NCBI GenBank assembly: GCA_946965045.2
Contig: OX337229.1
Coordinates: 6,014,001-6,078,000, forward strand
From: Epithemia pelagica
Taxonomy: Eukaryota > Protista > Bacillariophyta
Direction of reading: 5' to 3'
Length of the DNA: 64,000 nucleotides
In this document: piece by piece, positions 24,045 through 64,000 of the stretch
How the letters are laid out: the number at the start of each line of letters is the position of its first letter
How positions within the stretch are numbered: position 1 is the first letter of the stretch
The notes under the pieces: generated by a model
The model's input: the letters and a program-made list of their open reading frames with translations, nothing else
What the model was told of the DNA's origin: nothing
Database searches by the model: none
Translations under genes and position numbers: made by a program

Positions 24045-27000
24045 TTAACTTCCGGATCCCAGGGCGGTGAGAGCTTTGGCAATGGCATCCTGAATTTCCC
24101 GGAGTGTCCCCTTTTGCCGCGCTCCAATAGCTACGGCAAGACCTCCCACCAGTTCTTCTCCCTTGCACAGTCGGTAGAGTTTTTGGAGTGCAATAACGCA
24201 TTCATTTCGAAGTGTGGTGCGGTAGGCTCGGACTGCCGTAACATGTTTCAAAATGCGAAGGGCACTCTTTTTGGAACCATGGAGGGAATCCATGACGGTG
24301 GTGGTTGTCGTCGTTGTCGTGGACGAGGAGTCCCCCGTCGACAAGAGTGTACTCACAGATACACCCGATGGTCCCAACACCAGAAAGAAACCTGCCACCA
24401 GCTGGGAAAGGGACCCCAACATGAGGGCTTGCGATGCCGCTGTTTCTCGTTGCCCGTACAAGACAATGGATTTGACGACCCCATCGGCAATGGCAATTCG
24501 TTCCGCCGGAGACAAGGATACCTGTTCCGATAACAACTTCATCAAGCTGGTCCAGTCCAAGGATACTTCCGGGACATGATGAATCAGCCAATCCAATTCT
24601 TCAAACGGCAAGCCTTGCTTGAACAAGGCAGCGGCAAGCCCTCTGCGACTGCAGACAATCCATCGTACCAAGGACTCGGTGGCAAAGGAACGCATGTTAG
24701 AAGCGCCAGGAACGGAACAAGCTGACGAGACCAGACATCGAACGGTCAATAAATCTCGTGTGGCTAACAGCTCTCGAGAACTAACCTCCCATTGAAACTG
24801 ATCTTTCATACGATGTTGCAAGACGGATGAATTGGCATTGACCAGCATCGTCAAGAGAAACAGAATGATTCTTCGAACCCCCGGACGCATCCAAACCTCT
24901 TTGATAGGGCACTTGAATAGGGTCAAGGGATCCTCTATCAGCTTGGTATACGTGACAAACACCGGGGGAGCATGGAGCCTGGAAAGGAGTGCACTGGCCG
25001 TGGTACTAACGAGCGTTTGGTCGCTACACGTCAAAAAGGCTTGCAGAAACAGTCGTTCTGGCCGGGATCCGGATCGATCCGCGTCTTTGGGGGATGATGA
25101 CAAGCTGGAATGAAGGCGATGTTGGAGTTCTTCCTGACCCATCATGGTATCCTGTTTGGTCCGTGTGAACAGAAAACGAGGACAGGACTCGAGTCTCTGA
25201 TGATAACGCGAGAGTTCTATAACATCGGGTGCATATTGATCCAGGCACTCGAGCAAAAAGGCTTTTAATGCTCCAGAAATGGCACGGTTCCCATCCTTTG
25301 AGGAGTGAAGGAACAACCACACTTGTCGGAGCGGCATCAACCGAGGATTAAAACCAAATGCATTTCCCGGTGATTTGTCAAGAAACACAAAACAGTACAC
25401 CAACTGCAGTAAAAAGATGGCGCACTCCGTATCTATTGGATTGCTGTGCCATGTTTGCAAAAAGGCGGTCGCTTGGAGTTCGATACGCAGGGAGCTGACA
25501 ATGGGAACGGTGGGTCCTTCCAGATTGTTCCAGTACGACACCATGTTGACCATGAGAGGAAGCGTTTGTCGATCGGTCAAAAGTTGCATGGCCAGAGATT
25601 TGGATGGCGTTAGAATCAATGTGGTGAGAATTCGTTCCACAGTCTCCTTGGATAAAACGCTTGGACATGCCTGCATCACGACCGGAACCGAGGATGCGTC
25701 CTCCCGTAGTGTCGTGTCATCCAGCGAGGCTACGACCAAGGGCAAGAGATTCAGGTCACGATTGGCACACCATTCCCGGAGAGCAACTTCATCCTCTGTC
25801 CATCGTGCTTTGTACAACAATATCACGTCATTGTTTGCTTTTAAGTAAGAAAGTAAAAAGCTTCGAAATAAATGGGGCTCTGCTGATGGAGAAGAAGAAA
25901 GCAAGGTCGAAGCGAGAGAACCCACAAAGGCTTTGGTTTTCAGAGTTCCAGCCGCCTTCCACAGCTCTTTCAAACGATTCATCATGGGCTCCAAACTATG
26001 CCGTTCCTTGTCATCTGTGCTGGACACCTCTATTCTCGATTTGTCCAGGATGTAGGTCATGTATAGGATACAGGGCAACCACAAACAATAAATGTCGTTG
26101 TCCCAATCCTGCTGGCTGTCGTCCGTCGTTTGATGTGGATGGAGCAAAGAGAGGAGACGATTCGTTTCTTGGAGCACCCGATTGGTACTGGCGGGGTCCA
26201 AGAATGGCACACGACGCAGGGTCGAAAAGTCTTGTGTCACGCATACCCACAACAAGGCTTGAAGCAATAAACGCCGCTGTGCTGGACCAATATTACCACA
26301 ACCACTCGTACGGGGCAACAAGCCAAGAGTCAAAACATGGAGAATTCGAGGAATCCATGTTTCCACCCGGTTGACAATGGACTGCACCATGGACGGATGG
26401 AATGGATCCTGGTTGCTGCTCGGGTCCAGGAATGACGATGACGACGACAAGTGCTGCACTAACAAACAGGCGACCGTGATGGGATCCGCCGGATCCTCCA
26501 AGGCCAATTCCAGTTGGACATTGAGTAACATGTTGGTTCCTCGTAACGTGGTTCGAATGCGGTGTCGTTCTCGTGGTGACAGACTCGCCAATTCCAAGAG
26601 CGAGGCCCGAGCCAGTTGGTATTGTTGCGTCGACCAGCCAGACGACGACAAGGACGAGTGGGACGATGCCATGACCGTGGCCGAGGGGATTGTCGTGGTC
26701 GTTGTTGTTGTTGTTGGAATTGGATTGTCACTCGTGGGCAAGACAGGGGCAGCAGTAGCAGCATCCAACATTGGACGTTCCTGGTCGTTGTTGCTGTTGT
26801 TGTTGGTAGTGTCATCGTGGGTGTTTCCGTGAGAATGTAAAAGAACGAGCAGGCATCCGCGGACCAAACAGGGGAGCGCGGAGGGACAATTGACGGCCAA
26901 TCGTTTGAGGAGGACAGGTGTTTGCGGTTGTCCGGCCCGACACAAGGCCGCCGCCAAATGGGTATACCGAAGGACGGGGGCATGATACAAGAGCGAGGCA

Positions 27001-28049
27001 CAGGTGGCCCCCAAATCGGTGGACCCCGCACCACTTCCACTGGTTTCGGAAACGACACGAACTTGGGCCAAAATGGATTCTTCCATGGAGACACGCTGTC
27101 GTGGTTGTTGTTGTTCTGCCGGCTGGATGATGGTGGTGGTTGCGTTTGTCGTACTCTGTTTCGTTGGCTCGATCGGTGCCGTGGTAGGATCTGTAGGAGT
27201 AGGAATAGAAGACCATTGTTGTCGTTGTTGCTGGTGATGATGATCTGTTTCGTGTTGCAAATATCCCGCCACCAGCAATGCCAATTCGGACAGCGTCTTG
27301 GTACAAAAGGCTTCTTGGGAATCCTCGGCTTCTCCCCGTGCCAAGAGAATGGACTCGCGTTCTCCTGTTCCAGTCGTTGTTGTTGTTGTAATCGTCGAGC
27401 CGAGCGACAAAAGGCGTTTGCGTTTGGGGACACGTGGAGGTGGAGCTGGACAATGACGAGAATCTTGTGGTTGTGGCAGTTCGACATCCGAGTCCTCTTC
27501 CTCCTGGTCCTCGTCTTCTTCGTCTGGGTCTCCCAAACTCAAATCCTCGTCACCGGTTGTCGCACCGGCATCACTAGTGTGGTGTTGTTGTTGCTGTTGT
27601 TGTTGGGATGTTTTGGCCCGTTTCGTTTGGGTGCTCGTCGCTCCCGAGGCACGTTGGTTGTGTTGGTGTTGGGATGGTGCTTGTTGAAATCGGGAACTGG
27701 AGGGATTGAGTGCGACGGCCATGAGCGGTGCCGTATTCCACTGATAAGGGTTGTTTGTACGCTGGAGAGGCGGCAGTTTGGCAATTTTGCGACAGACAAA
27801 GGGGGACAAGTGACAGGCAACAACTTCGACACTTTCCGAGACGGAATAGACGGCGGCTCGATCTTCCAATCGTTGAACGGCCTGTTCCAATTCCGAATCG
27901 TAACTGGAGGAAGGAGGATGCTGGTCGTCGTCTTTCCTGACTGCTGTATCATCATGAGGAGGATTTGGGGGGTCGTCCTGGGTATTGTTGTGGTCCTCAT
28001 TGTCTTCTTGTTCTTCTTGTTGGGGGAGGTTCTGGTTGTTCCGTGTCGT

Positions 28050-28136
<87 letters not shown>

Positions 28137-28514
28137 TTGTAGACTGGTCCAGACAGAGGTTGTGGAGGTGGCCAAGGGTCGACTTTGAGACAATATTCGA
28201 AGCAAGAGTGGCAATCGTTCGACTTCGGCCTTTTGCCACTCCTCCTCCTCGTTGTCGTTGTGGTTGTTGTCGTCGTTGTGGTCGTCTCGACTGGTAGGAC
28301 AACGACGACGATTCCGTAACAATCCTTGTTCAAAATTCCCCAACGCTACGGAATCATGCAACTTATACAATGGATTTGGTTGGACCGCAGGGCCAGAGGA
28401 ACGATTCTTGTCGTCGTTGTCGTCGTCCTGCACAGGATGGATGACGGTGGTGGTGTGGGGAGCATCCATTCTCGTAGAACAAGAATGGATCCTGCTAGAC
28501 ACGTCCGTCTGCAT
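24045..28514 (-). CDS. INTS2: Probable Integrator complex subunit 2, with poly-Q and acidic insertions
   Basis: 1489-aa ORF. Segments recalled as INTS2-like: 'RLAVNCPSALPCLVRGCL', 'ARASLLELASLSP', 'EDPLTLFKCP...RRIILFLL' and 'ALFKQGLPFEELDWLIHHVPE'. Assignment is by eye. Confidence 0.65.
28051..28134. repeat. (TGT/CAA)28 microsatellite encoding poly-Gln in the INTS2-like gene
   Basis: Perfect run of about 84 bp. Confidence 0.95.
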
Positions 28515-29144
28515 GCCCGATTACTGCCTGTCCTCGAATAGGAATCGTTCCAACAAAAGGGCAGCAGAGAAGTCTCCAGCACCACCAGCACAAAACCAGT
28601 TCACTTCATGGTCTTCGTCGGGAGTCACCAACTATTACTCCTTCATAGAAACTATTCCTATCTACTATAGCTATCTGCAGAAAGGATTGGGTATCTCCTT
28701 CCCGTTTCGATCCCGGTCCGCTATAGTACGTCATCAGCTTCCGGATAAGCGCGACCTGATAGGGGACTTAATCCGTTCATGAAACTGACGTCAGTATATG
28801 GCGATCACGGAAAAAGGGCGGGTATCTATGCAATAGAATCTTTTGTGTCTCAGTTGCGTCGATGGTTTGGTGTGTTCTTGTTTTCTTCGATTGACACAAG
28901 CAATCTTACCATACGATTGATCTTCTTGTTCGTTTGTTTGTTCAGTGAAAACGAGAGAGAGCAACAAACAAACAAAAAAATGACCCTGTCGTGGCTGTTG
29001 CCTCGTCGCTTGGCGACTGCCCGTGTCGTCATTGGTCGATCCTTTTCGGCCGCCTTGTCGTCGTCGTCGTCGTCCCCAGTCCCCAACCACAACAACTACG
29101 ACAACACGACGCTTTCCCTATGCGGAATCCTTACCCTGGGCCAC
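28309..29144 (+). repeat. Left arm of an inverted segmental duplication (INTS2 5' end + promoter + P5CDH-like 5' end)
   Basis: Reverse complement of 33518-34290. For example, 'ccgtaacaatccttgttcaaaattcccc' and 'atgaccctgtcgtggctgttgcctcgtcgcttggcgactgc' are shared, with scattered substitutions and indels. Confidence 0.9.
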
Positions 29145-30458
29145 GGTCGATCCCTTGCAATTGAATGGATTGTTGATTTCCAAACTAGGCTTCCTCCTTC
29201 GAGACTCATCTGAGACAACGAAGAAGGAGAATAATGCCTTTGCCATTCCTTCCTTGACCGCTTTGGGATATACTAGTGCGGAACAACAGGAGGATGGATT
29301 GCAACACCGCGTCAAGGGTGGTATCGACTTTATGGGTGGAGAAATGGCCGGTCTGACACTTTTGGATACCATGATGCAACGTCATCAATGGGTCGCCACC
29401 TTTGAAAAACCCAAGACGAGTCCCAATGCCTTGACGGTCGATACGACCGGCTTGAGTCCCTATAAGTGACGACCGAACCGAACGAATCCACCGCCAGTAT
29501 ATATGTGTGTGCGTGTGCGCCGTACGTCCCCTCATGTTGCTGGCGTTTTTCTTGTGTGTGTGTGCGTTTCCGATGTCTGTGTATTTTATATTCTAGATGT
29601 CAAACATGGCTGTGTGTCACCGCGTCGCTTTTTTATGCCCTATCGGCCGTCTATACCAAGTTTCCCGCCCGGGAACGATCCAAACCCCCCGTCTCCTTGC
29701 ACGGTCAACTCATGTGGCGCGAATACAACTCTTCAATGGGCTACAGTACCCCCAATTTTGATCAAATGGTGGACAATCCCGTGGCGCGACAAATTCCCTG
29801 GGACGATGATCCCGCCTTGCTCCAGGCGTGGCGGAATTCGCAAACGGGATATCCTTTTATCGATGCCATCATGACGCAACTTCGGGAAACGGGATGGATT
29901 CATCATTTAGCACGACATGCCGTGGCATGCTTTTTGACGGGAGGGGATTTGTGGCAATCTTGGGTACCTGCAGCAGTATAATATGGTTGGTCCGTTTCGT
30001 TTCGCTTGGTATATCTGCTGCATAACCTATTATGCGACGCATGATTGCCCTCGCATATAATAGGATTGCACGACCACACTCTCACTTATCTCTTCTGCAA
30101 ATGGCTCCCTCAATTCAAGTACATGCCCAAAGCGTTTATCTATAAACCGTGGGAAGTACCTATTGAGGTACAACGAAAATGCGGTGTTGTCATTGGAAAG
30201 GATTATCCACCGCCCATTGTTAGTCTAGGTAACGTCGTCGTCGTGGTTTGTTCTCGGTGGGTGCTATGATTAGTGGCTCAATTTTCTGACGCCTTCTCTT
30301 CGAACGACCCCCAGGTGGATCACAGTGTCATTTCCAAGGCCAATATGGGCCGCATGAAACAAGCCTACGACCAACAAAACGGCGCCAATGCGGCTCCACC
30401 CGCCGCTCCGAAAGAACCAGCAGGAAACGAATCGGGCCGCAAACGACGGAGAACGTGA
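28980..30458 (+). pseudogene. Chimeric pseudogene: P5CDH 5' end fused to the C-terminal half of a (6-4) photolyase/cryptochrome (CPF1-like)
   Basis: MTLSWLLPRR... then a frameshift to 'YAESLPWATVDPLQL', then 'GGEMAGL...WVATFEKPKTSPNAL..TTGLSPY', 'HGCVSPR' and 'PPVSLHGQLMWREY'. Next come 'QTGYPFIDAIMTQLRETGWIHHLARHAVACFLTGGDLWQSW', 'KWLPQF..IYKPWE..GVVIGKDYPPPIV' and 'VDHSVISKANMGRMKQAY'. The N-terminal domain and the segment between DLWQSW and KWLP are missing. Confidence 0.85.
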
Positions 30459-30849: not shown

Positions 30850-33648
30850 CTAGTTCTCCTCCTCCTCCTCCTCCTCCTCGGCGTCACGGAGTTGAAAGGT
30901 GGATATGGTCGGTTCCAACATTTCACGAAACCAAACACGGGCGCGCTTGTAATCGGGAATAGGGAATTCTGCATTAGGCGGTTCGCGGAAGCTGCACGCC
31001 ATGATGCGATCACCGAGAGATATTGTTGCCGATGGATACTCTTGCTGTAACCGTGTCTCCAACAGACTGCGCAGGGCCTCCAAACCAGTGTAAGAGTATC
31101 CAGCTTTACCAACTTTGGGGCTGGAATCGTTGTTTTGAAATGAAATTCCGAGGGACGCCCACCAGGATTTAGTTTTTTTGGCACTCGCCATTGTCGTATG
31201 ATGTTTGCATTGGATCGTTACTAGCTCACCGGTCTTGCTTTTGTTGTCGAAAAGAAGAGCAAGGACAACCCCACCTTGCGCAGAAGCTGTTCCTTGGGAA
31301 AAGACAATGCACTCCCGACCATCTTCTTGTCCGATGGAAAGGTTAGGTAGCTCCATCTCCGATTGCTTTGCTAGCTTCTTTTTCAGATCCTTGATAACCG
31401 CGGCGGTAATATTGTCATCACGTTTGTTAGACATGGGTGGCCATGCATACCGTAGCGTGACACGCTGCGAACGATATCCTTGAATTTCCATTAAACGCTG
31501 GTAATGTAAAGCTGTCAACTCTTCCAATTCATTGCCAAATGAAGGCCGGATAGGACAGGTTAAACCAAAACAGGACATGTATTTGAGAGCTGCTGAGGTA
31601 CCCGACTTGACAGCAAGGCCCACTTCGAAGATCTCGTTTGAAGGCTTCTTGAGTTCTTTCACTTTCTCTCGCTCAATCTGTCGAATTTTCGAGACAGTTG
31701 CGTGTTCTCTCAGTGGTGGTCGAATCGCTGTCGAGAGATGATACACAAAGGATTCTGCCAACAACTCATCCCGCCTATTCGAGGACAAGTCACCCATAAT
31801 ATTCTTGGTGACAAAGAACCTGACCCCGTAATCCATGAGTGGGCCAAACGATGCAATGGCCTTCAGTCTTTCCTTGTATCGTCTTTTCTTCGTTTGAGGA
31901 TCAAAGTTACCGTCGACTGAGTGAAAACCTTGTCGAAGAACGGGGAGGATCCCTCTAAAGAGCATTCTTGAGTTGGTCTGGAGAACTCGAGAGAACAGCC
32001 CGTTGGATACTGCCCGACTTATTTCTGGTTTTATCACGCCTATCTTTTCAAGATGCTGCAGATCTGGTCCTTTCATTCGAATTAGTCTACTATAGGCAGG
32101 GTTTGTTCCTATCTGATTGCCATCACGGATTAAATCCAAACCAGTGCCCACCAGGACAAGAATGATCTGTTCCTTGACTAAACCATTCATCTCGCGGTAC
32201 GTCTGCCTCACAGTGTCAATCAAGCCCTCGACCAGATCAATATCCGTTGCCTCATCAAGAATCAGTGCAACCTTACTTGGCAATGCATCACTCGACCAAC
32301 AACCCTCGCTCCATGATCGGGCGTTTGCATCGCCTTCACAAAATTTCTTGAAAGCTTGTTTGAGAATCTCCCTCGCCCATTTGTTTCGTGATACGTCAAG
32401 CTTGGTCTTCAAGCTATCGATGACATCAATATGATTGCTGCTCTTTTCTTTGTGAACGTTTAGGACCCCCTGCAAAAACTTATGTATGTGTGGAAACTCG
32501 CTTTCTGGCTTCCTGGCGTAGACCTCGGAAACATCGGTCCTCTTACCCTCTCCTTTCTCCTCCTTGTTACTTTCTTCGTCCCCTTTCTTGTCCTCTCCCT
32601 CGTTCTCCCTTTGGTTTTTACTCATGCGTAGCAACATGTACAGTGGGATAAAACCACGCTCCATTGATTCAAGGCAAGAAAATACAGATTTACCACTGCC
32701 GCTTTCTCCGGCCACCACCAACGCATACGATTTGTCGTTTTGGATGTTGCTGTCTAGATTGTCAAATTCATTGACGCCATGAACTTGCACGTATTCCCTT
32801 TTTGTGGGGAGAACGCCGTTCTCATCGCTATCTCGGATAGGTAGGAGCTGCGACTCGCAAAATTTCTTGAATTCGTCCCTGTTTCCCTTGATTCGACCCA
32901 GTGCCTTGTCGGCGGTGTACCTGGTGTACTCGTCTTTGTCTTGGTAGAAGACAATATATTGTCCTCTAACGTCTTCACCGCTCCGAAAAGAGACTATCAG
33001 TTGCAGTTCTTTTCCTTCGACAGTCGAATCGGTTGCCGCCTCCAAGAGTTTCTCTGCTGACCCATATTCCTTTGCTACAAAGATATGTCTCCAGTCAACA
33101 GCAACGGAAACCACATTCATCCACTTTTTATCCTCCACCAGAGCATTCAACACATACTCTAGAAAATCTGGGTAACTCAAGGGTTGGTCGACTTTTGCTT
33201 TGCTGTGAGCATTTACGTCACTGTCACTGTCACTGCTGCAGCTGCTGTTGCCCTCATTGTCGATGCTACGACTATCGATAACATATGCAATGTCGGCGTC
33301 TCGATCTTGAATCAATTTTTCCAGCAAGGAATACTCGTCGACACTGAGGAGTGCTTGCGCAGCATCAAGCTCTTTTTTCAGTGCCCCTGATTCTTAATCC
33401 GGTTCTTCTTCTTGTTCTTGTGCAAGGGACGACGACAAGATTCCCAGATTCCTCCTCCTTGGGACCACAGCGGTCGTCGTCGTGGAAGCAGATGGGGAAA
33501 ATGCTTCCACCCTTTTGGTGGCCCAGGGTAAGGATTCCGCATAGGACAAGCGTCGTGTTGACGACGACGACAAGGCCGTCGAAAAGGATCGACCAATGAC
33601 GACAAGGGCAGTCGCCAAGCGACGAGGCAACAACCACGACAGGGTCAT
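30850..33648 (-). pseudogene. Crinkler/RHS-like P-loop NTPase + PD-(D/E)xK-like nuclease ORF with a chimeric leader; a single in-frame TAA at 33396-33394
   Basis: Walker A 'VVAGESGSGKS', Walker B 'LILDEA' and C-terminal 'SQGTASAQGGVVL...VTIQCK'. The 825-aa ORF has only a TTG start. The upstream ATG at 33648 (MTLSWLLPRR) is in the same frame, interrupted by one stop. Confidence 0.6.
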
Positions 33649-34290
33649 TTTTGTGTTGGTTAGTTGCTCTCTCTCGTCGTCTTCAATGAACAAACAAACA
33701 AGAAGATTGATTGTGTCAATCGAAGAAAACAAAAGAACACACCAAACCATCGACGCAAGACTACCCGCCCTCTCCGTGATCGCCATATACTGACGTCATT
33801 TTCATGAACGGATTGAGTCCCTTAGTAGGTCGCGCTTGTCCGGAAACAGATGACGTACTATAGCGGACCGGGATCGAAACGGGAAGGAGATACCCAATCC
33901 TTTCTGCAGATATCTAGTACAAGTTTCATAGAGTAGGAGTATAGTTGGTGAGAGTTGGTGACACCCGACGAAGACCATGAAGTGAAGATTCTCTCTCTGG
34001 TTTTGTGCTGGTGGTGCTGGAGACTTCTCTGCTGCTTTTCTGTTGGAACGATTCCTAATGTACGAGGAGAGGCAGTGTCCGAGCATGCAGACGGACGTGT
34101 CTAGCAGGATCCATTCTTGTTCTACGAGAATGGATGCTCCCCACACCACCACCGTCATCCATCCTGCGCAGGACGACGACAACGACGACAAGAATCGTCC
34201 TTCTGGCCCTGCTGTCACACCAAATCCATTGTATAAGTTGCATGATTCCGTAGCCTTGGGGAATTTTGAACAAGGATTGTTACGGAATCG
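33518..34290 (-). repeat. Right arm of the inverted segmental duplication
   Basis: Reverse-complement match to 28309-29144. Confidence 0.9.
34085..34290 (+). pseudogene. Truncated duplicate of the INTS2-like 5' coding end
   Basis: 'MQTDVSSRIHSCSTRMDAPHTTTVIHPAQDDDNDDKNRPSGPAVTPNPLYKLHDSVALGNFEQGLLRNR', then divergence and a stop. Confidence 0.85.
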
Positions 34291-35380: not shown

Positions 35381-37626
35381 TTACGTGGGTGGTGGTTGGA
35401 TCCAATCGGTGGGAATGGGGGCATGATCGGTAATAATTTCTCGATGACAGGACCACACGAGTTGTATGGCTTCGGGTGTCCCAATGCCGGCGCCTCGCGG
35501 ATCCCCCGCCGGTCCAAACCAATGGTTTTGGGGAGCGCCCGTGGTGCGGGCCCGTCGTCCCGTATAGGTTGTCCCATTCACGGTATGGGCCAAGACGTGT
35601 TGACAAAAGTCCACGTCATTGGAAACCACAGCAGCCGTCAAATGATGCGACATGCCTTCCATCAAGTCTAGGACGATCGGTAAGGTTTGGTCGTTGTAAT
35701 AGGAAATTACCTGAAAGGGAGCAAACAATTCTGTCGTACACAGGTCGACATGTTGGGGTTTGACCAATTCTTGCAACGGTACGTAGACTGCCGTGGGTTC
35801 CACGGCACCGTATTGTGGGGGAATGGTGTGCTGTTTGAGTTCCTGACCTCCAAACAAGACTTGGGCACCGGGGATACTCGACACTTGTTGGACATGATTC
35901 AAAAAGGTTTCCGTCGTGACCGTCATGGTCGGACCAACCGTCAAATCGGCCAAGCTTCGATGGGCGGCCGTGGCCTCGAGTCGTTCCATGAAATTTGTCG
36001 TCTTCCAATTCTCATGGACCAAGAGTATGGATTGGGCCGAACATTTTTGCCCCGCACAAGCGTAGGCATCTTGATCGCATTGCCAGGCAACATGGTTGAC
36101 CGTTTGTGGTTGTTCCGCAGTCGGCACGTCAGGTCCCAAAATCTTCCAATCAAAGCCGGCATCTTCCAATTTGATCTTGCCGCGCGTCACCGTGGCCAGC
36201 CGTTCTCCGACACGAGAGGATCCGGTAAATTGCGTCATGCGAATCGGAGCCTTGACCAAGAGTTGTTCCATGACGGGGCCTTGACAATTCAACTGCAAAA
36301 TGTAGAATAGAAATTGAGAATGGTGGAATGTGCGGGGTATAATATAAAAGGAATGACACAAGCCAGGGAGAAAACAACATCCGCATCGTCTGTGAGCAAC
36401 AGTTGTTTTTAGGGCGCTGCATACTGTGACCAATACAGGACGACAGTCGCCGAAAACAAAAACGTACCAAATCGCAATCGGATGGATCCATTCCACAATA
36501 ATGCAAGAGTCTCAGAAATTGTTCCATGACAATCTGCAATTAGTATTATCGAAACAAGTGAGGTCGGGTTGCAACAAACAGACAGAACGCGTGTGAGAGT
36601 GTCGGATCGTCCTTCCTTGCGTATTGTGCTCTCTAGTTTGTTCCAAGACAAAAGTGCTTGGAGGGTTTGCCACGACAGTAGATAGAAAGAAAGAGAACAC
36701 ACACACTCTCTCTGTAGATATACATGATACACACGAGCATGTGGCCCCCGTTCGATGGAACAGCAAGAAGAAGAAGAACCGCACAATATGCCACCATCAC
36801 AACAACAACAACAACAACAACAACGTATTGTACGTACTGACGCTGGCTCCGAGGGTTTGAGGACAGCCTTGTTGCCCATGAAGAGTGCTCCCATGACTTG
36901 CAAGACGGGAATTTCCAAAGGAAAATTAAAGGGACAAATGACCGCCACGGAACCGTACGGCCATCGATGACCGACCGACATTTGACCCACGTGATCACCG
37001 GGTACACCAAAGGATGTGGCCAAGCGACGGACATTGTCGCCGGCAAAATTGTTCAAAAACGAGGCCGTGACACGGACTTCTCCCATGGCTTGGTCATACG
37101 ATTTGGGAACACAGGCTTGAATGCATCGCGCAAAAAAGTCAGAGCCAGCCGGAGAGGACAAGACGTGACCGGCCTTTCGCGCAATGTCGCCCCATTCCAA
37201 ATAGCGATGTACATCTTTCAGGGGATTGTGCAAGCCACTCTTGGGGACCTTGGCCAAACTTTGACAAAAGAGTATCAATTCGTCCGTTTCGTTGGTTTTG
37301 GGAATGCTAAACAAGGCATGAGGGGCATTTCGATCCAAAGGTGCCGGAATGTCCAAGCGATCTTGTTGTTCATGCCCAGTCCATTTGCCGTCGCACAAGT
37401 TTTGGATGCGATAGGGATTGGGATCGTATCCAGTCAATTGCAAGGGATCGACCGTGGCCCACGGTAAGGATTCCGCATACGACAAGCGTGTAGAAGACGT
37501 TGTTTTTGTTGTTGTTGTTGTTGCGGACGACGACGACGACGACGACGACAAGGCGGCCGAAAAGGATCGCCCAATGACGACACGGGCAGTCACCAAGCGA
37601 CGAGGCAACAGCCACGACAGGGTCAT
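35381..37626 (-). CDS. ALDH12: Mitochondrial delta-1-pyrroline-5-carboxylate dehydrogenase, plant-type (ALDH12)
   Basis: Exons 37626-36838, 36533-36468 and 36292-35381 join in frame at GT-AG sites. Motifs 'WPYGSVAVICPFNFPLEIP', 'FTGSSRV', 'KLEDAGFDWKILGPD', 'AYACAGQKCSAQS', 'ELFAPFQV' and 'GAPQNHWFGPAGDPRGAGIGTPEAI'. The N-terminus is R/S/T-rich, like a mitochondrial presequence. Confidence 0.95.
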
Positions 37627-38080
37627 TTTTTGGTTGGTTTGTTGCTCTCTCTCGTCTTCACTGAACAAACAAACAAACAAGAAGATCAATCGTAGTATGG
37701 GAAGATTGCTTCTGTCAATAGAAGAAAACAAGAACACCCCAAACCGTCGACGCAGATGTAAAACAAGAGAGAAAAGAGAATGCTCTTGCTTTGTGTTCTC
37801 AAAGAATCGCGGAAGATTCCCTCCCTCATTGATCAGTCGCTCAAAACAACTCAAGACTCAACCAACAACGAATGTAATAAGGTTCGGGATATACTGTGTA
37901 GGACTATCCAGGCTACCATTGGACCGCTTCGCGGTAAAGAGTCGACTAAGTTCAGTATCTGTTATCTGTGCAGTGGAATCCGTGACTGAACGAACCAGAA
38001 GTACTGAAATATGTAGACTACTTAGGAGTGAGAATAAAGAGAGACGGTGTAACTGAACTTCCTGGGAGTAGTTGTGGAAT

Positions 38081-38543
38081 TCTAGTATCCACAGGTTTCG
38101 GAATGTGAAAACGTTGTCACTTATATTCCACGCCATACGATATCTGATGATGCAATGCAATTTGGGTGCGGCAACTCTAATGGTATAGTTGTTCCTGTTC
38201 GACTTGAGGCTATAGTACTATAAGATTTGTCGCCATTTGTTTCGCGTGAGAACAACTCTAGTATCCACAGGTTTTGGAATGTGAAAATGGTGTCACTTAA
38301 AGTCCACGCCATAAGGTATCTGATAATGCAATGCAATTTGGGTTCGGCAACTTTGATGGTATACTTGTTCCTGTTCGACTTGAGGCTATATTACTACAAG
38401 ATTTGTCGCCATTTGTTTCGCGTGAGAACAACTCTAGTATCCACAGGTTTTGGAATGTGAAAATGGTGTCACTTATAGTCCACGCCATAAGGTATCTGAT
38501 AATGTAATGCAATTTGGGATCGGCAACTTTGATGGTATACTTG
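38081..38543. repeat. 176-bp satellite, left edge of the array (about 2.6 monomers)
   Basis: Same monomer as the larger blocks: ...gaggctatagtactataagatttgtcgccatttgtttcgcgtgagaacaactctag... Confidence 0.95.
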
Positions 38544-39299
38544 TGTTAGGATTCTCACCTTTAACTAGGTGATGGTGGAATCTACAACACATCGACTGAT
38601 GCTAGTATTTTATGGCATCCGATGACATTTTCCTAAAAGTGAGAAAAGAATGTCGGCATGCTCGCGAAACTATAAATTTGGCCACGGCATGCTCGCAGTG
38701 CACGCGTTATCGGCGACCGCTCGGATATTAACTATGGCCCAACACGTGCGCGCCCAAAACTATCAAGTGCGCGCCTCTACTATCCGAGTACGCGCATCCA
38801 CGATTCGACCTAACGGTCTATGTAATCAAAGCACGAATCACGATCACGCGAGACCATATCTCTGTTCCCACAAATCCAAGAATGCAAACAGCAACGCGCC
38901 CAGGACAAGACTTATACCACGACAAAGCAAGAGCTGTTGCATCCCATACATGTTATCCATCACCCTATACATTCAATACACACCAATGCCGGTCTACTCC
39001 AACCAGTGAGGACCTATCACACCAGATCCATGGCCGTATACAAGAGCAAGGACTTCGGCACCATCAACCACCTTAGTTAGTAATCGTCTCACAATCATTA
39101 ATATCACCATTTTAACACTCATCTTAAGACTAACCTCTTATCAGTGGACCGACTGCCCCCACCCACGGCGGACTTCGACTTGCAACTCTTCTCTGACCCG
39201 TGGAGGATTGTTGTATCGGTTGGTGATCGATTGTCGGCTCAGCGAGCCTTTTACCCAACTACCTATTACCCTTCTGAATTCTCAATGAGAGTTCTGCTA
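38544..39299 (+). repeat. 5' LTR (TGTTAG...CTGCTA)
   Basis: No difference from the 3' LTR in the lines compared by eye; the embedded 119-aa and 64-aa ORFs translate identically. Confidence 0.93.
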
Positions 39300-43921: not shown

Positions 43922-46900
43922 ACTTGTTCCTGTTCGACTTGAGGCTATAGTACTATAAGATTTGTCGCCATTTGTTTCGCGTGAGAACAACTCTAGTATC
44001 CACAGGTTTTGGAATGTGAAACTGTTGTCACTTATAGTCCACGCCAGAAGGTATCTGATAATGCAATGCAATTTGGGTTCGGCAACTTTGATGGTATACT
44101 TGTTCCTGTTCGACTTGAGGCTATAGTACTATAAGATTTGTCGCCATTTGTTTCGCGTGAGAACAACTCTAGAATCCGCATGTTTTGGAATGTGAAAAAG
44201 GTGTCACTTATAGTCCACGCCATAAGGTATCTGATGATGTAATGCAATTTGGGTTCGGCAACTTTGATGGTATACTTGTTCCTGTTCGACTTGAGGCTAT
44301 TGTACTATAAGATTTGTCGCCATTTGTTTCGCGTGAGAACAACTCTAGAATCCACAGGTTTTGGAATGTGAAACTGTTGTCACTTATAGTCCACGCCATA
44401 AGGTATCTGATAATGCAATGCAATTTGGGTTCGGCAACTATGATGGTATACTTGTACCTGTGCGACTTGAGGCTATACTACTATAAGATTTGTCGCCATT
44501 TGTTTCGCGTGAGAACAACTCTAGTATTTCATGTTTTGGAATGTGAACCTGTTGTCACTTATAGTCCACGCCATAAGGTATTTGATAATTCAATGCAATT
44601 TGGGTTCGGCAACTTAAATGGTATACTTGTTCCTGTTCGACTTGAGGCTATATTACTACAAGATTTGTCGCCATTTGTCTCGCGTGAGAACAACTCTAGA
44701 ATCCACAGGTTTTGGAATGTGAAACTGTTGTCACTTATAGTCCACGCCAGAAGGTATCTGATAATGCAATGCAATTTGGGTTCGGCAACTTTGATGGTAT
44801 ACTTGTTCCTGTTCGACTTGAGGCTATAGTACTATAAGATTTGTCGCCATTTGTTTCGCGTGAGAACAACTCTAGTATCCACAGGTTTTGGAATGTGAAC
44901 CTGTTGTCACTTATAGTCCACGCCAGAAGGTATTTGATAATGCAATGCAATTTGGGTTCGGCAACTATGATGGTATACTTGTACCTGTGCGACTTGAGGC
45001 TATACTACTATAAGATTTGTCGCCATTTGTTTCGCGTGAGAACAACTCTAGTATCCACAGGTTTTGGAATGTGAACCTGTTGTCACTTATAGTCCACGCC
45101 AGAAGGTATTTGATAATGCAATGTAATTTGGGTTCGGCAACTTTGATGGTATACTTGTTCCTGTTCGACTTGAGGCTATAGTACTATAAGATTTGTCGCC
45201 ATTTGTTTCGCGTGAGAACAACTCTAGTATCCTCATGTTTTGGAATGTCAAACTGGTGTCACTTATAGTCCACGCCATAAGGTATCTGATAATGCAATGC
45301 AATTTGGGTTCGGCAACTATGATGGTATACTTGTACCTGTTCGACTTGAGGCTATACTACTATAAGATTTGTCGCCATTTGTTTCGCGTGAGAACAACTC
45401 TAGAATCCGCATGTTTTGGAATGTGAAAAAGGTGTCACTTATAGCCCACGCCATAAGGTATCTGATGATGTAATGCAATTTGGGTTCGGCAACTTTGATG
45501 GTATACTTGTTCCTGTTCGACTTGAGGCTATTGTACTATAAGATTTGTCGCCATTTGTTTCGCGTGAGAACAACTCTAGAATCCACAGGTTTTGGAATGT
45601 GAAACTGTTGTCACTTATAGTCCACGCCAGAAGGTATCTGATAATGCAATGCAATTTGGGTTCGGCAACTTTGATGGTATACTTGTTCCTGTTCGACTTG
45701 AGGCTATAGTACTATAAGATTTGTCGCCATTTGTTTCGCGTGAGAACAACTCTAGAATCCGCATGTTTTGGAATGTGAAAAAGGTGTCACTTATAGTCCA
45801 CGCCATAAGGTATCTGATGATGTAATGCAATTTGGGTTCGGCAACTTTGATGGTATACTTATTCCTGTTCGACTTGAGGCTATTGTACTATAAGATTTGT
45901 CGCCATTTGTTTCGCGTGAGAACAACTCTAGAATCCACAGGTTTTGGAATGTGAAACTGTTGTCACTTATAGTCCACGCCATAAGGTATCTGATAATGCA
46001 ATGCAATTTGGGTTCGGCAACTTAAATGGTATACTTGCTCCTGTTCGACTTGAGGCTATAGTACTATAAGATTTGTCGCCATTTGTTTCGCGTGAGAACA
46101 ACTCTAGTATCCACATGTTTTGGAATGTCAAACTTTTGTCACTTATAGTCCACGCCATAAGTTATCTGATGATGCAATGCAATTTGGGTTCGGCAACTAT
46201 GATGGTATACTTGTACCTGTTCGACTTGAGGCTATAGTACTATAAGATTTGTCGCCATTTGTTTCGCGTGAGAACAACTCTAGTATCCACAGGTTTTGGA
46301 ATGTGAACCTGTTGTCACTTATAGTCCACGCCATAAGGTATTTGATAATGCAATGCAATTTGGGTTCGGCAACTTTGATGGTATACTTGTTCCTGTTCGA
46401 CTTGAGGCTATATTACTACAAGATTTGTCGCCATTTGTTTCGCGTGAGAACAACTCTAGAATCCACAGGTTTTGGAATGTGAAACTGTTGTCACTTATAG
46501 TCCACGCCAGAAGGTATCTGATAATGCAATGCAATTTGGGTTCGGCAACTTTGATGGTATACTTGTTCCTGTTCGACTTGAGGCTATAGTACTATAAGAT
46601 TTGTCGCCATTTGTTTCGCGTGAGAACAACTCTAGTATCCACAGGTTTTGGAATGTGAACCTGTTGTCACTTATAGTCCACGCCATAAGGTATCTGATAA
46701 TGCAATGCAATTTGGGTTCGGCAACTATGATGGTATACTTGTACCTGTGCGACTTGAGGCTATACTACTATAAGATTTGTCGCCATTTGTTTCGCGTGAG
46801 AACAACTCTAGTATCCACAGGTTTTGGAATGTGAACCTGTTGTCACTTATAGTCCACGCCATAAGGTATCTGATGATGTAATGCAATTTGGGTTCGGCAA

Positions 46901-46941
46901 CTTTAATGGTATACTTGTTCCTGTTCGACTTGAGGCTATAG
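43922..46941. repeat. 176-bp satellite block (about 17 monomers)
   Basis: Head-to-tail monomers with 176-bp periodicity (ORF-track artefacts recur every 176 bp). A representative monomer is about 40% GC by hand count. Confidence 0.98.
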
Positions 46942-58802: not shown

Positions 58803-61800
58803 AGTACTATAAGATTTGTCGCCATTTGTTTCGCGTGAGAACAACTCTAGTATCCACAGGTTTTGGAATGTGAAAATGGCGTCACTTATAGTCCACGCCA
58901 TAAGGTATCTGATGATGTAATGCAATTTGGGTTCGGCAACTTTGATGGTATACTTGTTCCTGTTCGACTTGAGGCTATAGTACTATAAGATTTGTCGCCA
59001 TTTGTTTCGCGTGAGAACAACTCTAGAATCCGCATGTTTTGGAATGTGAAAAAGGTGTCACTTATAGTCCACGCCATACGGTATCTGATGATGTAATGCA
59101 ATTTGGGTTCGGCAACTTTGATGGTATACTTGTTCCTGTTCGACTTGAGGCTATAGTACTATAAGATTTGTCGCCATTTGTTTCGCGTGAGAACAACTCT
59201 AGAATCCACAGGTTTTGGAATGTGAACCTGTTGTCACTTATAGTCCACGTCATAAGGTATCTGATAATGCAATGCAATTTGGGTGCGGCAACTTTGATGG
59301 TATACTTGTTCCTGTTCGACTTGAGGCTATAGTACTATAAGATTTGTCGCCATTTGTTTCGCGTGAGAACAACTCTAGTATCCACAGGTTTTGGAATATG
59401 AACCTGTTGTCACTTATAGTCCACGCCATAAGTTATCTGATGATGCAATGCAATTTGGGTTTGGCAACTTTGATGGTATACTTGTTCCTGTTCGACTTGA
59501 GGCTATAGTACTATAAGATTTGTCGCCATTTGTTTCGCGTGAGAACAACTCTAGTATCCTCATGTTTTGGAATGTGAAAATGGTGTCACTTATAGTCCAC
59601 GTCATAAGGTATCTGATAATGCAATGCAATTTGGGTGCGGCAACTTTGATGGTATACTTGTTCCTGTTCGACTTGAGGCTATAGTACTATAAGATTTGTC
59701 GCCATTTGTTTCGCGTGAGAACAACTCTAGTATCCACAGGTTTTGGAATGTGAAAATGGTGTCACTTATAGTCCACGCCATAAGGTATCTGATGATGTAA
59801 TGCAATTTGGGTGCGGCAACTTTGATGGTATACTTGCTCCTGTTCAACTTGAGGCTATTGTACTATAAGATTTGTCGCCATTTGTTTCGCGTGAGAACAA
59901 CTCTAGAATCCACAGGTTTTGGAATGTGAAAATGGTGTCACTTATAGTCCACGCCATAAGGTATCTGATAATTCAATGCAATTTGGGTTCGACAACTTTG
60001 ATGGTATACTTGTTCCTGTTCAACTTGAGGCTATTGTACTATAAGATTTGTCGCCATTTGTTTCGCGTGAGAACAACTCTAGAATCCACAGGTTTTGGAA
60101 TGTGAAAATGGTGTCACTTATAGTCCACGCCATAAGGTATCTGATAATTCAATGCAATTTGGGTTCGGCAACTTAAATGGTATACTTGTTCCTGTTCGAC
60201 TTGAGGCTATAGTACTATAAGATTTGTCGCCATTTGTTTCGCGTGAAAACAACTCTAGTATCCACAGGTTTTGGAATGTGAAAATGGTGTCACTTATAGT
60301 CCACGTCATAAGGTATCTGATAATGCAATGCAATTTGGGTGCGGCAACTTTGATGGTATACTTGTTCCTGTTCGACTTGAGGCTATACTACTATAAGATT
60401 TGTCGCCATTTGTTTCGCGTGAGAACAACTCTAGTATCCACAGGTTTTGGAATGTGAAAAAGGTGTCACTTATAGTCCACGCCATAAGGTATCTGATGAT
60501 GTAATGCAATTTGGGTGCGGCAACTTTGATGGTATACTTGTTCCTGTTCCCCTTGAGGCTATTGTACTATAAGATTTGTCGCCATTTGTTTCGCGTGAGA
60601 ACAACTCTAGAATCCACAGGTTTTGGAATGTGAAAATGGTGTCACTTATAGTCCACGCCATAAGGTATCTGATGATGTAATGCAATTTGGGTTCGGCAAC
60701 TTTGATGGTATACTTGTTCCTGTTCCACTTGAGGCTATTGTACTATAAGATTTGTCGCCATTTGTTTCGCGTGAGAACAACTCTAGAAACCACAGGTTTT
60801 GGAATGTGAAAATGGTGTCACTTATAGTCCACGCCATAAGGTATCTGATGATGCAATGCAATTTGGGTTCGGCAACTTAAATGGTATACTTGTTCCTGTT
60901 CGACTTGAGGCTATTGTACTATAAGATTTGTCGCCATTTGTTTCGCGTGAGAACAACTCTAGAATCCACAGGTTTTGGAATGTGAAAATGGTGTCACTTA
61001 TAGTCCACGCCATAAGGTATCTGATGATGCAATGCAATTTGGGTTCGGCAACTTAAATGGTATACTTGTTCCTGTTCGACTTGAGGCTATTGTACTATAA
61101 GATTTGTCGCCATTTGTTTCGCGTGAGAACAACTCTAGTATCCACAGGTTTTGGAATATGAACCTGTTGTCACTTATAGTCCACGCCATAAGGTATCTGA
61201 TGATGTAATGCAATTTGGGTTCGGCAACTTTGATGGTATACTTGTTCCTGTTCGACTTGAGGCTATAGTACTATAAGATTTGTCGCCATTTGTTTCGCGT
61301 GAGAACAACTCTAGTATCCACAGGTTTTGGAATGTGAAAATAGTGTCACTTAAAGTCCACGCCATAAGTTATCTGATGATGCAATGCAATTTGGGTGCGG
61401 CAACTTTGATGGTATACTTGCTCCTGTTCAACTTGAGGCTATTGTACTATAAGATTTGTCGCCATTTGTTTCGCGTGAGAACAACTCTAGTATCCACAGG
61501 TTTTGGAATGTGAAAATGGTGTCACTTATAGTCCACGCCATAAGGTATCTGATGATGTAATGCAATTTGGGTGCGGCAACTTTGATGGTATACTTGCTCC
61601 TGTTCAACTTGAGGCTATTGTACTATAAGATTTGTCGCCATTTGTTTCGCGTGAGAACAACTCTAGAATCCACAGGTTTTAAAATGTGAAAATGGTGTCA
61701 CTTATAGTCCACGCCATAAGGTATCTGATAATTCAATGCAATATCTGATGATGCAATGCAATTTGGGTTCGGCAACTTTGATGGTATACTTGTTCCTGTT

Positions 61801-64000
61801 CGACTTGAGGCTATAGTACTATAAGATTTGTCGCCATTTGTTTCGCGTGAGAACAACTCTAGAATCCGCATGTTTTGGAATGTGAAAAAGGTGTCACTTA
61901 TAGTCCACGCCATAAGGTATCTGATGATGTAATGCAATTTGGGTTCGGCAACTTTGATGGTATACTTGTTCCTGTTCGACTTGAGGCTATACTACTATAA
62001 GATTTGTCGCCATTTGTTTCGCGTGAGAACAACTCTAGAATCCACAGGTTTTGGAATGTGAAAATGGTGTCACTTATAGTCCACGCCATAAGGTATCTGA
62101 TAATGCAATGCAATTTGGGTTCGGCAACTTTGATGGTATACTTGTTCCTGTTCGACTTGAGGCTATAGTACTATAAGATTTGTCGCCATTTGTTTCGCGT
62201 GAGAACAACTCTAGTATCCACAGGTTTTGGAATGTCAAAATGGTGTCACTTATAGTCCACGCCATAAGGTATCTGATGATGCAATGCAATTTGGGTGCGG
62301 CAACTTTGATGGTATACTTGTTCCTGTTCGCCTTGAGGCTATAGTACTATAAGATTTGTCGCCATTTGTTTCGCATGAGAACAACTCTAGAATCCACAGG
62401 TTTTGGAATGTGAAAAAGGTGTCACTTATAGTCCACGCCATAAGGTATCTGATGATGTAATGCAATTTGGGTTCGGCAACTTTGATGGTATACTTGTTCC
62501 TGTTCCACTTGAGGCTATTGTACTATAAGATTTGTCGCCATTTGTTTCGCGTGAGAACAACTCTAGAATCCACAGGTTTTGGAATGTGAAAATGGTGTCA
62601 CTTATAGTCCACGCCATAAGGTATCTGATGTTGCAATGCAATTTGGGTTCGGCAACTTAAATGGTATACTTGTTCCTGTTCGACTTGAGGCTATTGTACT
62701 ATAAGATTTGTCGCCATTTGTTTCGCGTGAGAACAACTCTAGAATCCACAGGTTTTGGAATGTGAAAATGGTGTCACTTATAGTCCACGCCATAAGGTAT
62801 CTGATGATGCAATGCAATTTGGGTTCGGCAACTTAAATGGTATACTTGTTCCTGTTCGACTTGAGGCTATTGTACTATAAGATTTGTCGCCATTTGTTTC
62901 GCGTGAGAACAACTCTAGTATCCACAGGTTTTGGAATATGAACCTGTTGTCACTTATAGTCCACGCCATAAGGTATCTGATGATGTAATGCAATTTGGGT
63001 TCGGCAACTTTGATGGTATACTTGTTCCTGTTCGACTTGAGGCTATAGTACTATAAGATTTGTCGCCATTTGTTTCGCGTGAGAACAACTCTAGTATCCA
63101 CAGGTTTTGGAATATGAACCTGTTGTCACTTATAGTCCACGCCATAAGGTATCTGATGATGCAATGCAATTTGGGTTCGGCAACTTAAATGGTATACTTG
63201 TTCCTGATCGACTTGAGGCTATTGTACTATAAGATTTGTCGCCATTTGTTTCGCGTGAGAACAACTCTAGAATCCACAGGTTTTGGAATGTGAAAATGGT
63301 GTCACTTATAGTCCACGCCATAAGGTATCTGATGTTGTTATGCAATTTGGGTGCGGCAACTTTGATGGTATACTTGCTCCTGTTCAACTTGAGGCTATTG
63401 TACTATAAGATTTGTCGCCATTTGTTTCGCGTGAGAACAACTCTAGAATCCACAGGTTTTGGAATGTGAAAATGGTGTCACTTATAGTCCACGCCATAAG
63501 GTATCTGATAATTCAATGCAATTTGGGTTCGACAACTTTGATGGTATACTTGTTCCTGTTCGACTTGAGGCTATAGTACTATAAGATTTGTCGCCATTTG
63601 TTTCGCGTGAAAACAACTCTAGTATCCACAGGTTTTGGAATGTGAAAATGGTGTCACTTATAGTCCACGCCATAAGGTATCTGATAATTCAATGCAATTT
63701 GGGTTCGACAACTTTGATGGTATACTTGTTCCTGTTCGACTTGAGGCTATAGTACTATAAGATTTGTCGCCATTTGTTTCGCGTGAGAACAACTCTAGTA
63801 TCCACATGTTTTGGAATGTGAAAAAGGTGTCACTTATATTCCACGCCATACGATATCTGATGATGCAATGCAATTTGGGTGCGGCAACTTTGATGGTATA
63901 CTTGTTCCTGTTCGCCTTGAGGCTATAGTACTATAAGATTTGTCGCCATTTGTTTCGCATGAGAACAACTCTAGAATCCACAGGTTTTGGAATGTGAAAA
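58803..64000. repeat. 176-bp satellite block (about 29.5 monomers), continuing beyond the window
   Basis: Head-to-tail monomers; one has a 20-bp internal duplication near 61725-61760. Confidence 0.98.

Follow-up and report, generated by a model that had tools for sequence, protein, structure and literature searches.

Mitochondrial presequences can be gained through gene duplication, recombination and exon shuffling, an established route exemplified by plant cytochrome c1, with a presequence from GAPDH, and by rice RPS14/SDHB (PMC6198282). The presequences of diatom plastid proteins, for their part, carry an ASAFAP motif in which an aromatic residue or Leu is required at +1 (PMC2173943). Here we analysed a 64,000-nucleotide stretch of DNA from the diatom Epithemia pelagica (contig OX337229.1, positions 6,014,001 to 6,078,000; hereafter the window), in which a gene on the minus strand combines the two kinds of leader: its first 44 codons come from the head of a P5CDH gene and its next 40 codons are what remains of a plastid-type leader belonging to a multi-copy family of predicted ATPase-nucleases. 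This swap of leaders is a well-documented example of the known route of presequence capture by duplication and recombination. As in the published cases (PMC6198282), a mitochondrial targeting sequence and the DNA upstream of it have been copied in frame onto an unrelated coding region. The case differs from them in that the recipient already had a bipartite plastid-type leader, of which only the signal peptide was displaced, and in that the join lies within an exon at a microhomology rather than in an intron, the donor is only 4 kb off and the product is interrupted by a stop codon. We put the probability of the account as a whole, namely that a P5CDH module was captured, that the chimera was once intact and constrained and that both of its descendants are now broken, at about 60%.

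The captured leader, its donor and the junction

Positions 33519-33757 duplicate the start of an aldehyde dehydrogenase gene lying 4 kb off on the minus strand (35381-37626), comprising about 110 bp 5' of its ATG and codons 1-44. The 5' portion of this captured module (33649..33757, minus strand) is promoter-proximal DNA and 5' untranslated region (5'UTR) from P5CDH, and homology to the gene proper and to a sister copy of the chimera (L054) begins here, from 33757 downward; codons 1-44 (M1 to T44; 33517..33648, minus strand) are assigned to the P5CDH mitochondrial-type presequence by homology and composition. The window holds three copies of this module, which we call A (the chimera), B (the gene proper) and C. 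Copy B (37428..37770, minus strand) is the module as it stands at the start of the ALDH12-type P5CDH gene, which has introns, and is 80% identical to copy A with gaps included (33560-33757 against 37538-37754), blocks of the alignment reaching 92-96%. Copy B represents the 5' end of the donor gene, and either B or C may have been the direct template of the captured leader. Searching the P5CDH exons singly, and the leader and core of the chimera as separate pieces rather than across the stop, we found that both proteins of the donor gene match Pfam Aldedh and that for its exon 1 the match is to the mitochondrial P5CDH of plants, ALDH12 (6d97), with E 1e-59. This alignment begins at residue 55, so that the copied 44 codons lie wholly within the N-terminal extension. 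ALDH12/P5CDH is an enzyme of the mitochondrial matrix. The P5CDH origin of the leader, proposed in a preliminary description made from the letters of the window, is hence borne out by DNA homology to the 5' end of P5CDH and by the exon 1 match. The two P5CDH introns observed (36536-36837 and 36296-36474, minus strand) have GTACGT donors and TTGCAG acceptors, and the first of them holds a (GTT)n run that was read as poly-Cys in the mechanical list of open reading frames (ORFs).

Residues 1-46 of the chimeric leader include seven K/R against one D/E, with the first acidic residue at position 38, and are amphipathic, with a maximum hydrophobic moment of 0.57 over 18 residues. Their Kyte-Doolittle maximum over 15 residues is 1.39, the same as that of the P5CDH leader, and they contain no hydrophobic core of signal-peptide grade. 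By these crude measures the leader shows the features of a mitochondrial presequence, being Arg-rich, nearly free of acidic residues, amphipathic and taken from the gene of a mitochondrial protein.

The leader type that was displaced survives in the genome. At least five paralogues (L017, L018, L019 twice, L020 and the gene in L022) begin M..MTRRRQR..IPPWIWALFVVAVWAIVP, followed by TKK or NNACWG and then by VEA/FSPSGSTTTT (the slash marks the predicted cleavage site). After the Met they have an n-region rich in Arg, a hydrophobic core of 17 residues, VEA/FSPSGSTTTT, a basic S/T-rich stretch and PD-K-ESGALKKELDAA. The hydrophobic cores of L017-L022 score 2.25-2.35 on the 15-residue Kyte-Doolittle scale, against 1.89 for the signal peptide of the genome's own light-harvesting (FCP) protein and 1.39 for the P5CDH leader. 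The FCP proteins of this genome have sites of the types AAA/FAP, ASA/FNF and ASA/FLP, and the ASAFAP rule therefore applies in Epithemia pelagica; VEA/FSP agrees with it at -3, -1, +1 and +3. In a paralogue of the L018 type the 34 residues past VEA include four K/R, one D/E and 32% S/T, and the window copy is similar until its Q/E-rich linker. Compared with the bipartite plastid presequence of diatoms (PMC2173943), then, the paralogues share the n-region, the hydrophobic core, V-E-A at -3/-1, F at +1, P at +3 and the S/T-rich basic stretch, whereas the window copy lacks the first feature, the signal peptide, and keeps the cleavage-site remnant V47-E48-A49/F50-S-P and the transit-like part. We take the signal-peptide leader of the paralogues to be a predicted plastid address. 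Two points of the preliminary description stand on this comparison: that VEAFSPS matches an ASAFAP-like site, which is of the same type as those of the genome's own FCP proteins, and that a signal peptide had preceded VEAF, since at least five paralogues still possess one. Among homologues from other species, some of which are complete MMETSP transcripts, a signal peptide followed by F is present in some (P0007, P0020, P0021) and absent from others (P0009-P0014, P0019). The same leader also occurs outside the family: at L056:488-2800 (G000:C2:5992487 onward, plus strand) the signal peptide, VEA/F and S/T-rich stretch, together with about 60 bp of the DNA preceding them, head a metallophosphoesterase ORF that is open over about 770 codons (motifs GDLH, GNHD and GHFH), so that one plastid-type leader cassette serves two unrelated genes.

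An alignment of nine 5' regions places the join to the base. Across it the sequence is ..GGGCCAC/GGTC in P5CDH, ..GTTCCAAC/CAAGAAGGTGGAAGC in a paralogue of the signal-peptide type and ..GGGCCAC/CAAAAGGGTGGAAGC in the window (the slash here marks the join); in an alternative rendering, the paralogue is ..GTTCCAAC/CAAGAAGG and the chimera ..GGGCCAC/CAAAAGGG. The junction lies at a CCA-C microhomology (33514..33521, minus strand), is identical in the sister copy and falls three codons 5' of VEA/F, whereby the whole signal peptide was removed and the cleavage-site remnant and transit-peptide-like stretch were kept. This retained remnant (codons 45-84; 33397..33516, minus strand) is 88-94% identical to the stretch that follows the signal peptide in L017-L022 and consists of K45 R46, V47-E48-A49/F50 (the former signal-peptidase site), the S/T-rich basic transit-like stretch and the Q/E-rich linker. 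The earlier proposal that a mitochondrial presequence had replaced a plastid-type signal peptide is thus supported at the DNA level by the junction and the paralogues, the targeting itself being predicted.

We propose that the first part of the ALDH12-type P5CDH gene gave rise by copying to a module of about 240 bp, carrying about 110 bp of promoter-proximal and 5'UTR DNA and presequence codons 1-44, and that this module was joined non-homologously, through the CCA-C microhomology, to one of the genes of a multi-copy diatom family whose products have an AAA+-like P-loop ATPase and, after it, a restriction-endonuclease-like domain. The join would have deleted the signal peptide and retained the transit-like stretch, giving an in-frame chimeric ORF of 932 codons, in a single event predating the duplication into window and sister copies. 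Without a signal peptide the product would be barred from the route through the endoplasmic reticulum to the plastid, its Arg-rich amphipathic N-terminus would direct it to mitochondria, and the piece of P5CDH promoter would drive its expression.

The stop codon, the sister copy and apparent constraint on the core

On the minus strand, the ATG at 33648-33646 starts the leader and a single frame runs from it into the 825-amino-acid ORF (30850-33327), which is open as far as 33393. The frame totals 932 codons (84 + 1 + 847), and TAA at 33396-33394 is its sole stop, in full agreement with the preliminary description, which had named this codon as the only break. The order of the leader is P5CDH-like sequence to T44, KR-VEAF-SPS...EEEPD, the TAA and then ESGALKKELDAAQ in the frame of the 825-amino-acid ORF. 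In the alignment of 5' regions all eight paralogues, the sister copy included, read GAT AAA GAA where the window reads GAT TAA GAA. The leader-core stretch is read through in the same frame in these eight, with AAA (Lys) at the position of the TAA, and the continuity of leader and core is therefore not due to chance. The nonsense codon (codon 85; 33394..33396, minus strand) differs from AAA (Lys) by a single A-to-T change and, judged against these sequences, it is a true nonsense change relative to all relatives and not a read-through feature.

A stop inside an otherwise continuous frame could also be spliced out. An intron of 141 nt in phase 0, from GT at 33510 to AG at 33370, would excise the TAA and join the P5CDH presequence straight to LDAAQALL..., and GT and AG are indeed present at in-frame positions. 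The donor (GTGGAA) and acceptor (AAGAG) are, however, unlike those of the P5CDH introns nearby (GTACGT...TTGCAG), and the proposed intron is coding and free of stops in the eight paralogues; we consider such an intron scarcely credible.

The sister copy (C2:6098991; L054), 51 kb beyond, shares the junction exactly and reads AAA at codon 85. Its codon 5 is TAG, where copies A, B and C have TGG, so that the TAG is unique to it, and it contains a 534-bp tandem duplication (99.8% identity; L054:3563-4629, C2:6100062-6101128), a very recent event that puts the sequence out of frame past codon 578. Because the window and sister copies share the junction and are broken by different, unique changes, parsimony indicates that their common ancestor had an intact chimeric ORF of 932 codons. 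The later breaks would be AAA to TAA at codon 85 in the window and TGG to TAG at codon 5, together with the frameshifting duplication, in the sister; as these sequences read, each descendant is broken separately and the sister is clearly dead. The cores of the two copies differ by about 5% (synonymous divergence, dS, 0.086) and the difference between the upstream arms of the window copy and copy C is 13%, from which it follows that the fusion is not brand new.

Whether the core was maintained by selection after the fusion was judged from changes polarised with two outgroup paralogues and the sister copy. Along the window lineage 15 synonymous and 15 non-synonymous changes have accumulated, against a ratio of about 1:3.6 given by the site counts (binomial P 6.5e-4); the sister lineage (8:21) and the C18 copy (3:18) are as expected of pseudogenes. 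About 4.6% of random substitutions in this sequence give a stop, so that the approximately 64 changes per lineage would be expected to bring about three stops; there are none in the 847-codon core of the window copy and none in that of the sister. The window also keeps 103 of the 104 columns that are invariant among the homologues from other species. The column lost is Asp687, which has become Val (D687V) within the GGD...IQCK motif, conserved in the family and reading GGV in the window. The codon (GTT; 31267..31269, minus strand) corresponds to the putative metal-binding Asp of the D...QxK motif elsewhere, and Asp stands there in all homologues from other species and in half of the paralogues. 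Val687 is shared by the window and the copies at C2 5.96-5.99 Mb, and the sister, C7 and C18 copies have Asp (the paralogues noted for this site being L004, L005, L007 and L009/L012); such a distribution points to a core that is mosaic in origin or has undergone gene conversion. Taken together, the core of the window copy still looks constrained, and the chimera appears to have been under some constraint for a time.

Several observations weigh against our account. D687V costs the protein a conserved Asp that is probably catalytic. Of the 33 changes specific to the window, 14 replace G by A on the coding strand, a transition bias that may inflate the synonymous excess and that could reflect deamination or methylation of cytosines on the other strand; seven of the 33 are common to the L009 cluster, so gene conversion may likewise have inflated this excess. 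Pairwise dN/dS (non-synonymous over synonymous divergence) among the copies is 0.5-0.74, and most close paralogues have stops or frameshifts, whereby the entire subfamily may be drifting. Targeting was judged from composition and hydropathy, and the account is read from DNA. Finally, the call of the TAA comes from assembled sequence.

A drift of the subfamily would bear on the possibility that the chimera was dead on arrival, a neutral by-product of segmental duplication which never worked and whose open frames reflect its youth and gene conversion from intact paralogues. In such a scenario the patchwork nature of the region (three P5CDH modules, a photolyase-fragment chimera, 176-bp satellite arrays and transposons), the broken paralogues and the pairwise dN/dS values would all be expected, and a junction falls in frame by chance one time in three. 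With about 5% divergence from the sister and 13% between the arms, however, the chimera is not very young and yet both cores are free of stops, and neither the synonymous excess in the window lineage nor the retention of 103 of 104 invariant residues fits a sequence that was never used. We regard this explanation as unlikely, though likelier than the other rivals.

At the other extreme, the gene may still be functional, with the TAA being an assembly error, a haplotype-specific allele or a codon that is read through, and a mitochondrion-targeted ATPase-nuclease being made. In favour of this are the intact core, with its apparent constraint, the single base substitution behind the only stop among 932 codons, the retained promoter arm, and two other members of the family (L060 and L069) that bear Arg-rich leaders without signal peptides on open frames. 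The same base is nevertheless found in the contig-level assembly held by ENA (ERZ21939226, ctg1257l), which is 100% identical over 14.5 kb and is not independent, being probably made from the same reads; the leader frame is lost in the sister too, and D687V alters a residue that is invariant in homologues from other species and kept by about half of the paralogues. A gene that still works as a whole thus has, in our view, a low probability. Still more improbable is that the P5CDH piece serves as promoter and 5'UTR only, the 84-codon leader being an upstream ORF and translation of the core beginning internally (the first ATG in frame is at 33120) to give a leaderless cytosolic or nuclear protein. 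Members that are leaderless or have leaders resembling a nuclear localisation signal (NLS) do exist, such as L002 and L008 with a short N-terminus bearing a basic KRQR cluster and P0019 with PPKRRKA, and the core is intact; but a start at 33120 loses about 90 residues, among them the family-conserved ELDAAxxLL motif, and reinitiation after an ORF of 84 codons is inefficient. Returning to the account of capture followed by decay, the chimera was probably once a functional retargeting product, and the window copy is now most likely recently inactivated or at least uncoupled from its leader.

Rearrangements around the chimera

The surroundings of the gene are a patchwork. Upstream of the captured module lies an arm (33758..34290, minus strand) that is common only to copy C, where it is inverted (28309-28838; 87% identity over 33800-34290). 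The arm contains a truncated copy of the first approximately 75 codons of a neighbouring gene of 1489 amino acids (24045-28514, minus strand), that is, a bidirectional promoter region. Copy C itself, comprising module and upstream arm (28309..29170, plus strand), meets the 3' half of a cryptochrome/photolyase gene at 29170/29171 and makes up, with it, a second chimera (28980-30270, plus strand) in which the module runs in the P5CDH reading frame onto the photolyase 3' half (Pfam FAD_binding_7), its ATG frame being lost in a Ser/Thr repeat. Full-length photolyase copies are found at C7 (about 959-962 kb) and at the sister locus, which makes copy C a second and later junction.

Copies A and C together form an inverted repeat of about 800 bp and 81% identity (28309-29144, plus strand; 34290-33518, minus strand), whose arms hold the approximately 75 codons of the 1489-amino-acid gene and the P5CDH module and flank a 4.35-kb segment with the photolyase 3' half and the family gene. 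The arrangement looks like the outcome of a fold-back or template-switch rearrangement. Arrays of a 176-bp satellite occupy 38078-38544, 43922-46941 and 58803-64000, starting 300 bp upstream of copy B, and this satellite may explain why the upstream arm is present in A and C and missing from B.

The protein family, its other leaders and the meaning of the swap

The open core of 847 codons (30850..33393, minus strand), listed as an ORF of 825 amino acids from TTG 33327, belongs to a putative ATPase-nuclease family. Its Walker A motif (GESGSGKS, 32686-32709) and Walker B motif (ILDEATD, 32242-32262) are invariant in 12 homologues, and its QCK lies at 31204-31212, all on the minus strand. A search of the genome gave 48 matching segments, with at least 10 close copies of 84-90% amino-acid identity clustered at C2 5.96-6.10 Mb, C7 0.95-0.97 Mb and C18 1.35 Mb; one paralogue that is intact lies at C7:970598-973042. 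Pfam yielded a sub-threshold match to KaiC for the window protein (E 0.021) and AAA_22 in three of 12 aligned homologues, and profile searches of the family protein in NCBIfam and PDB gave no match. A look-up of the protein cluster for transcript-derived members found ENA genome-derived members only.

Structural modelling divides the protein in two. Residues 160-545 (predicted local distance difference test, pLDDT, 69) resemble the AAA+/STAND ATPases ORC/Cdc6, RFC, NOD2 and Apaf-1, with Foldseek E of about 1e-3 and low template-modelling (TM) scores of 0.25-0.33. Residues 545-825 (pLDDT 77) form an alpha-beta-beta-beta-alpha-beta core, for which VIA-align places Card1, Cdn1, AF1548, VC1899, PaqCI, FokI, Can2 and Hjc on top with Z of 4-5.8, below the reliable level; the model is suggestive of a restriction-endonuclease-like fold. 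A reading of this domain as a CE-clan protease (Foldseek, TM 0.2-0.3) was not adopted, as topology, motif and VIA-align favour the restriction-endonuclease-like core, neither assignment being secure.

Language-model look-alikes of the protein include oomycete and fungal hypothetical proteins, and also clusters in which the Crinkler N-domain occurs. A nucleoside triphosphatase (NTPase) followed by a restriction endonuclease (REase) is given as the commonest C-terminal architecture of Crinklers (CRN) in the summary of Zhang et al. 2016 offered by PMC5289972. As far as that summary goes, the diatom family is like the NTPase + REase modules of oomycetes and fungi in having a P-loop NTPase and then, in the model, an alpha-beta-beta-beta-alpha-beta core with D...QxK, and in consisting of multi-copy, fast-evolving genes within transposon-rich regions (PMC5289972). 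It differs in belonging to a free-living photosynthetic diatom and in carrying organelle-type or NLS-like leaders, not headers for translocation into a host, and the REase side of the comparison has the weak fold scores given above (Z 4-5.8). The Crinkler/Ubl header (PF20147) had no Pfam match in the window protein and 11 homologues. The relation of the family to Crinklers is accordingly one of resemblance, not of membership.

Leaders vary among distant members of the family with homologous cores, as between L067 (C2:5.40 Mb, minus strand), which has a signal peptide, and L069:1246 (C2:5594045, plus strand), which has an Arg-rich leader. L060:1390 (C9:264189, plus strand) bears an Arg-rich extension, 60 residues long and free of acidic residues, L057 and L058 are leaderless and L066 (C11:2.145 Mb, minus strand) has a classic signal peptide (..GCSA/FGG). 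A search of the genome's own DNA for the donor of the 60-residue leader of L060 returned weak matches of 71-73% on C5 only. The coexistence of signal peptide + F leaders, short NLS-like heads and at least three distinct Arg-rich leaders without a signal peptide (P5CDH, C9:264189 and C2:5.59 Mb) leads to a broader reading, in which the family would have been re-addressed repeatedly to every compartment that holds DNA (nucleus, plastid and mitochondrion) through the capture of promoter-plus-leader cassettes from neighbouring genes, recurrently and under selection. We consider this reading rather doubtful.

Changes in the address of a protein are usually inferred long after they occurred. In this case the donor gene, the unswapped type of recipient, the exact junction and a sister copy all survive in one genome, so that the event can be traced to the single base and its steps put in order of time. 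The swap indicates that the bipartite plastid leader of a diatom can be converted in one step, by replacement of the signal peptide alone, into what should be a mitochondrial leader with a transit-like tail, and the chimeric leader bears in this way on the similarity of plastid transit peptides and mitochondrial presequences. Since the window copy is interrupted, the immediate biological consequence is probably nil; the case would gain in interest if the gene proved to be expressed, if an allele without the stop came to light or if targeting to organelles turned out to be selected. Were the capture of leaders selected across the family, the ATPase-nucleases would be aimed at organelle DNA, and recurrent re-addressing of this kind would make them nucleases that police or attack organelle genomes, for example in defence, in selfish behaviour or in the control of organelle inheritance.

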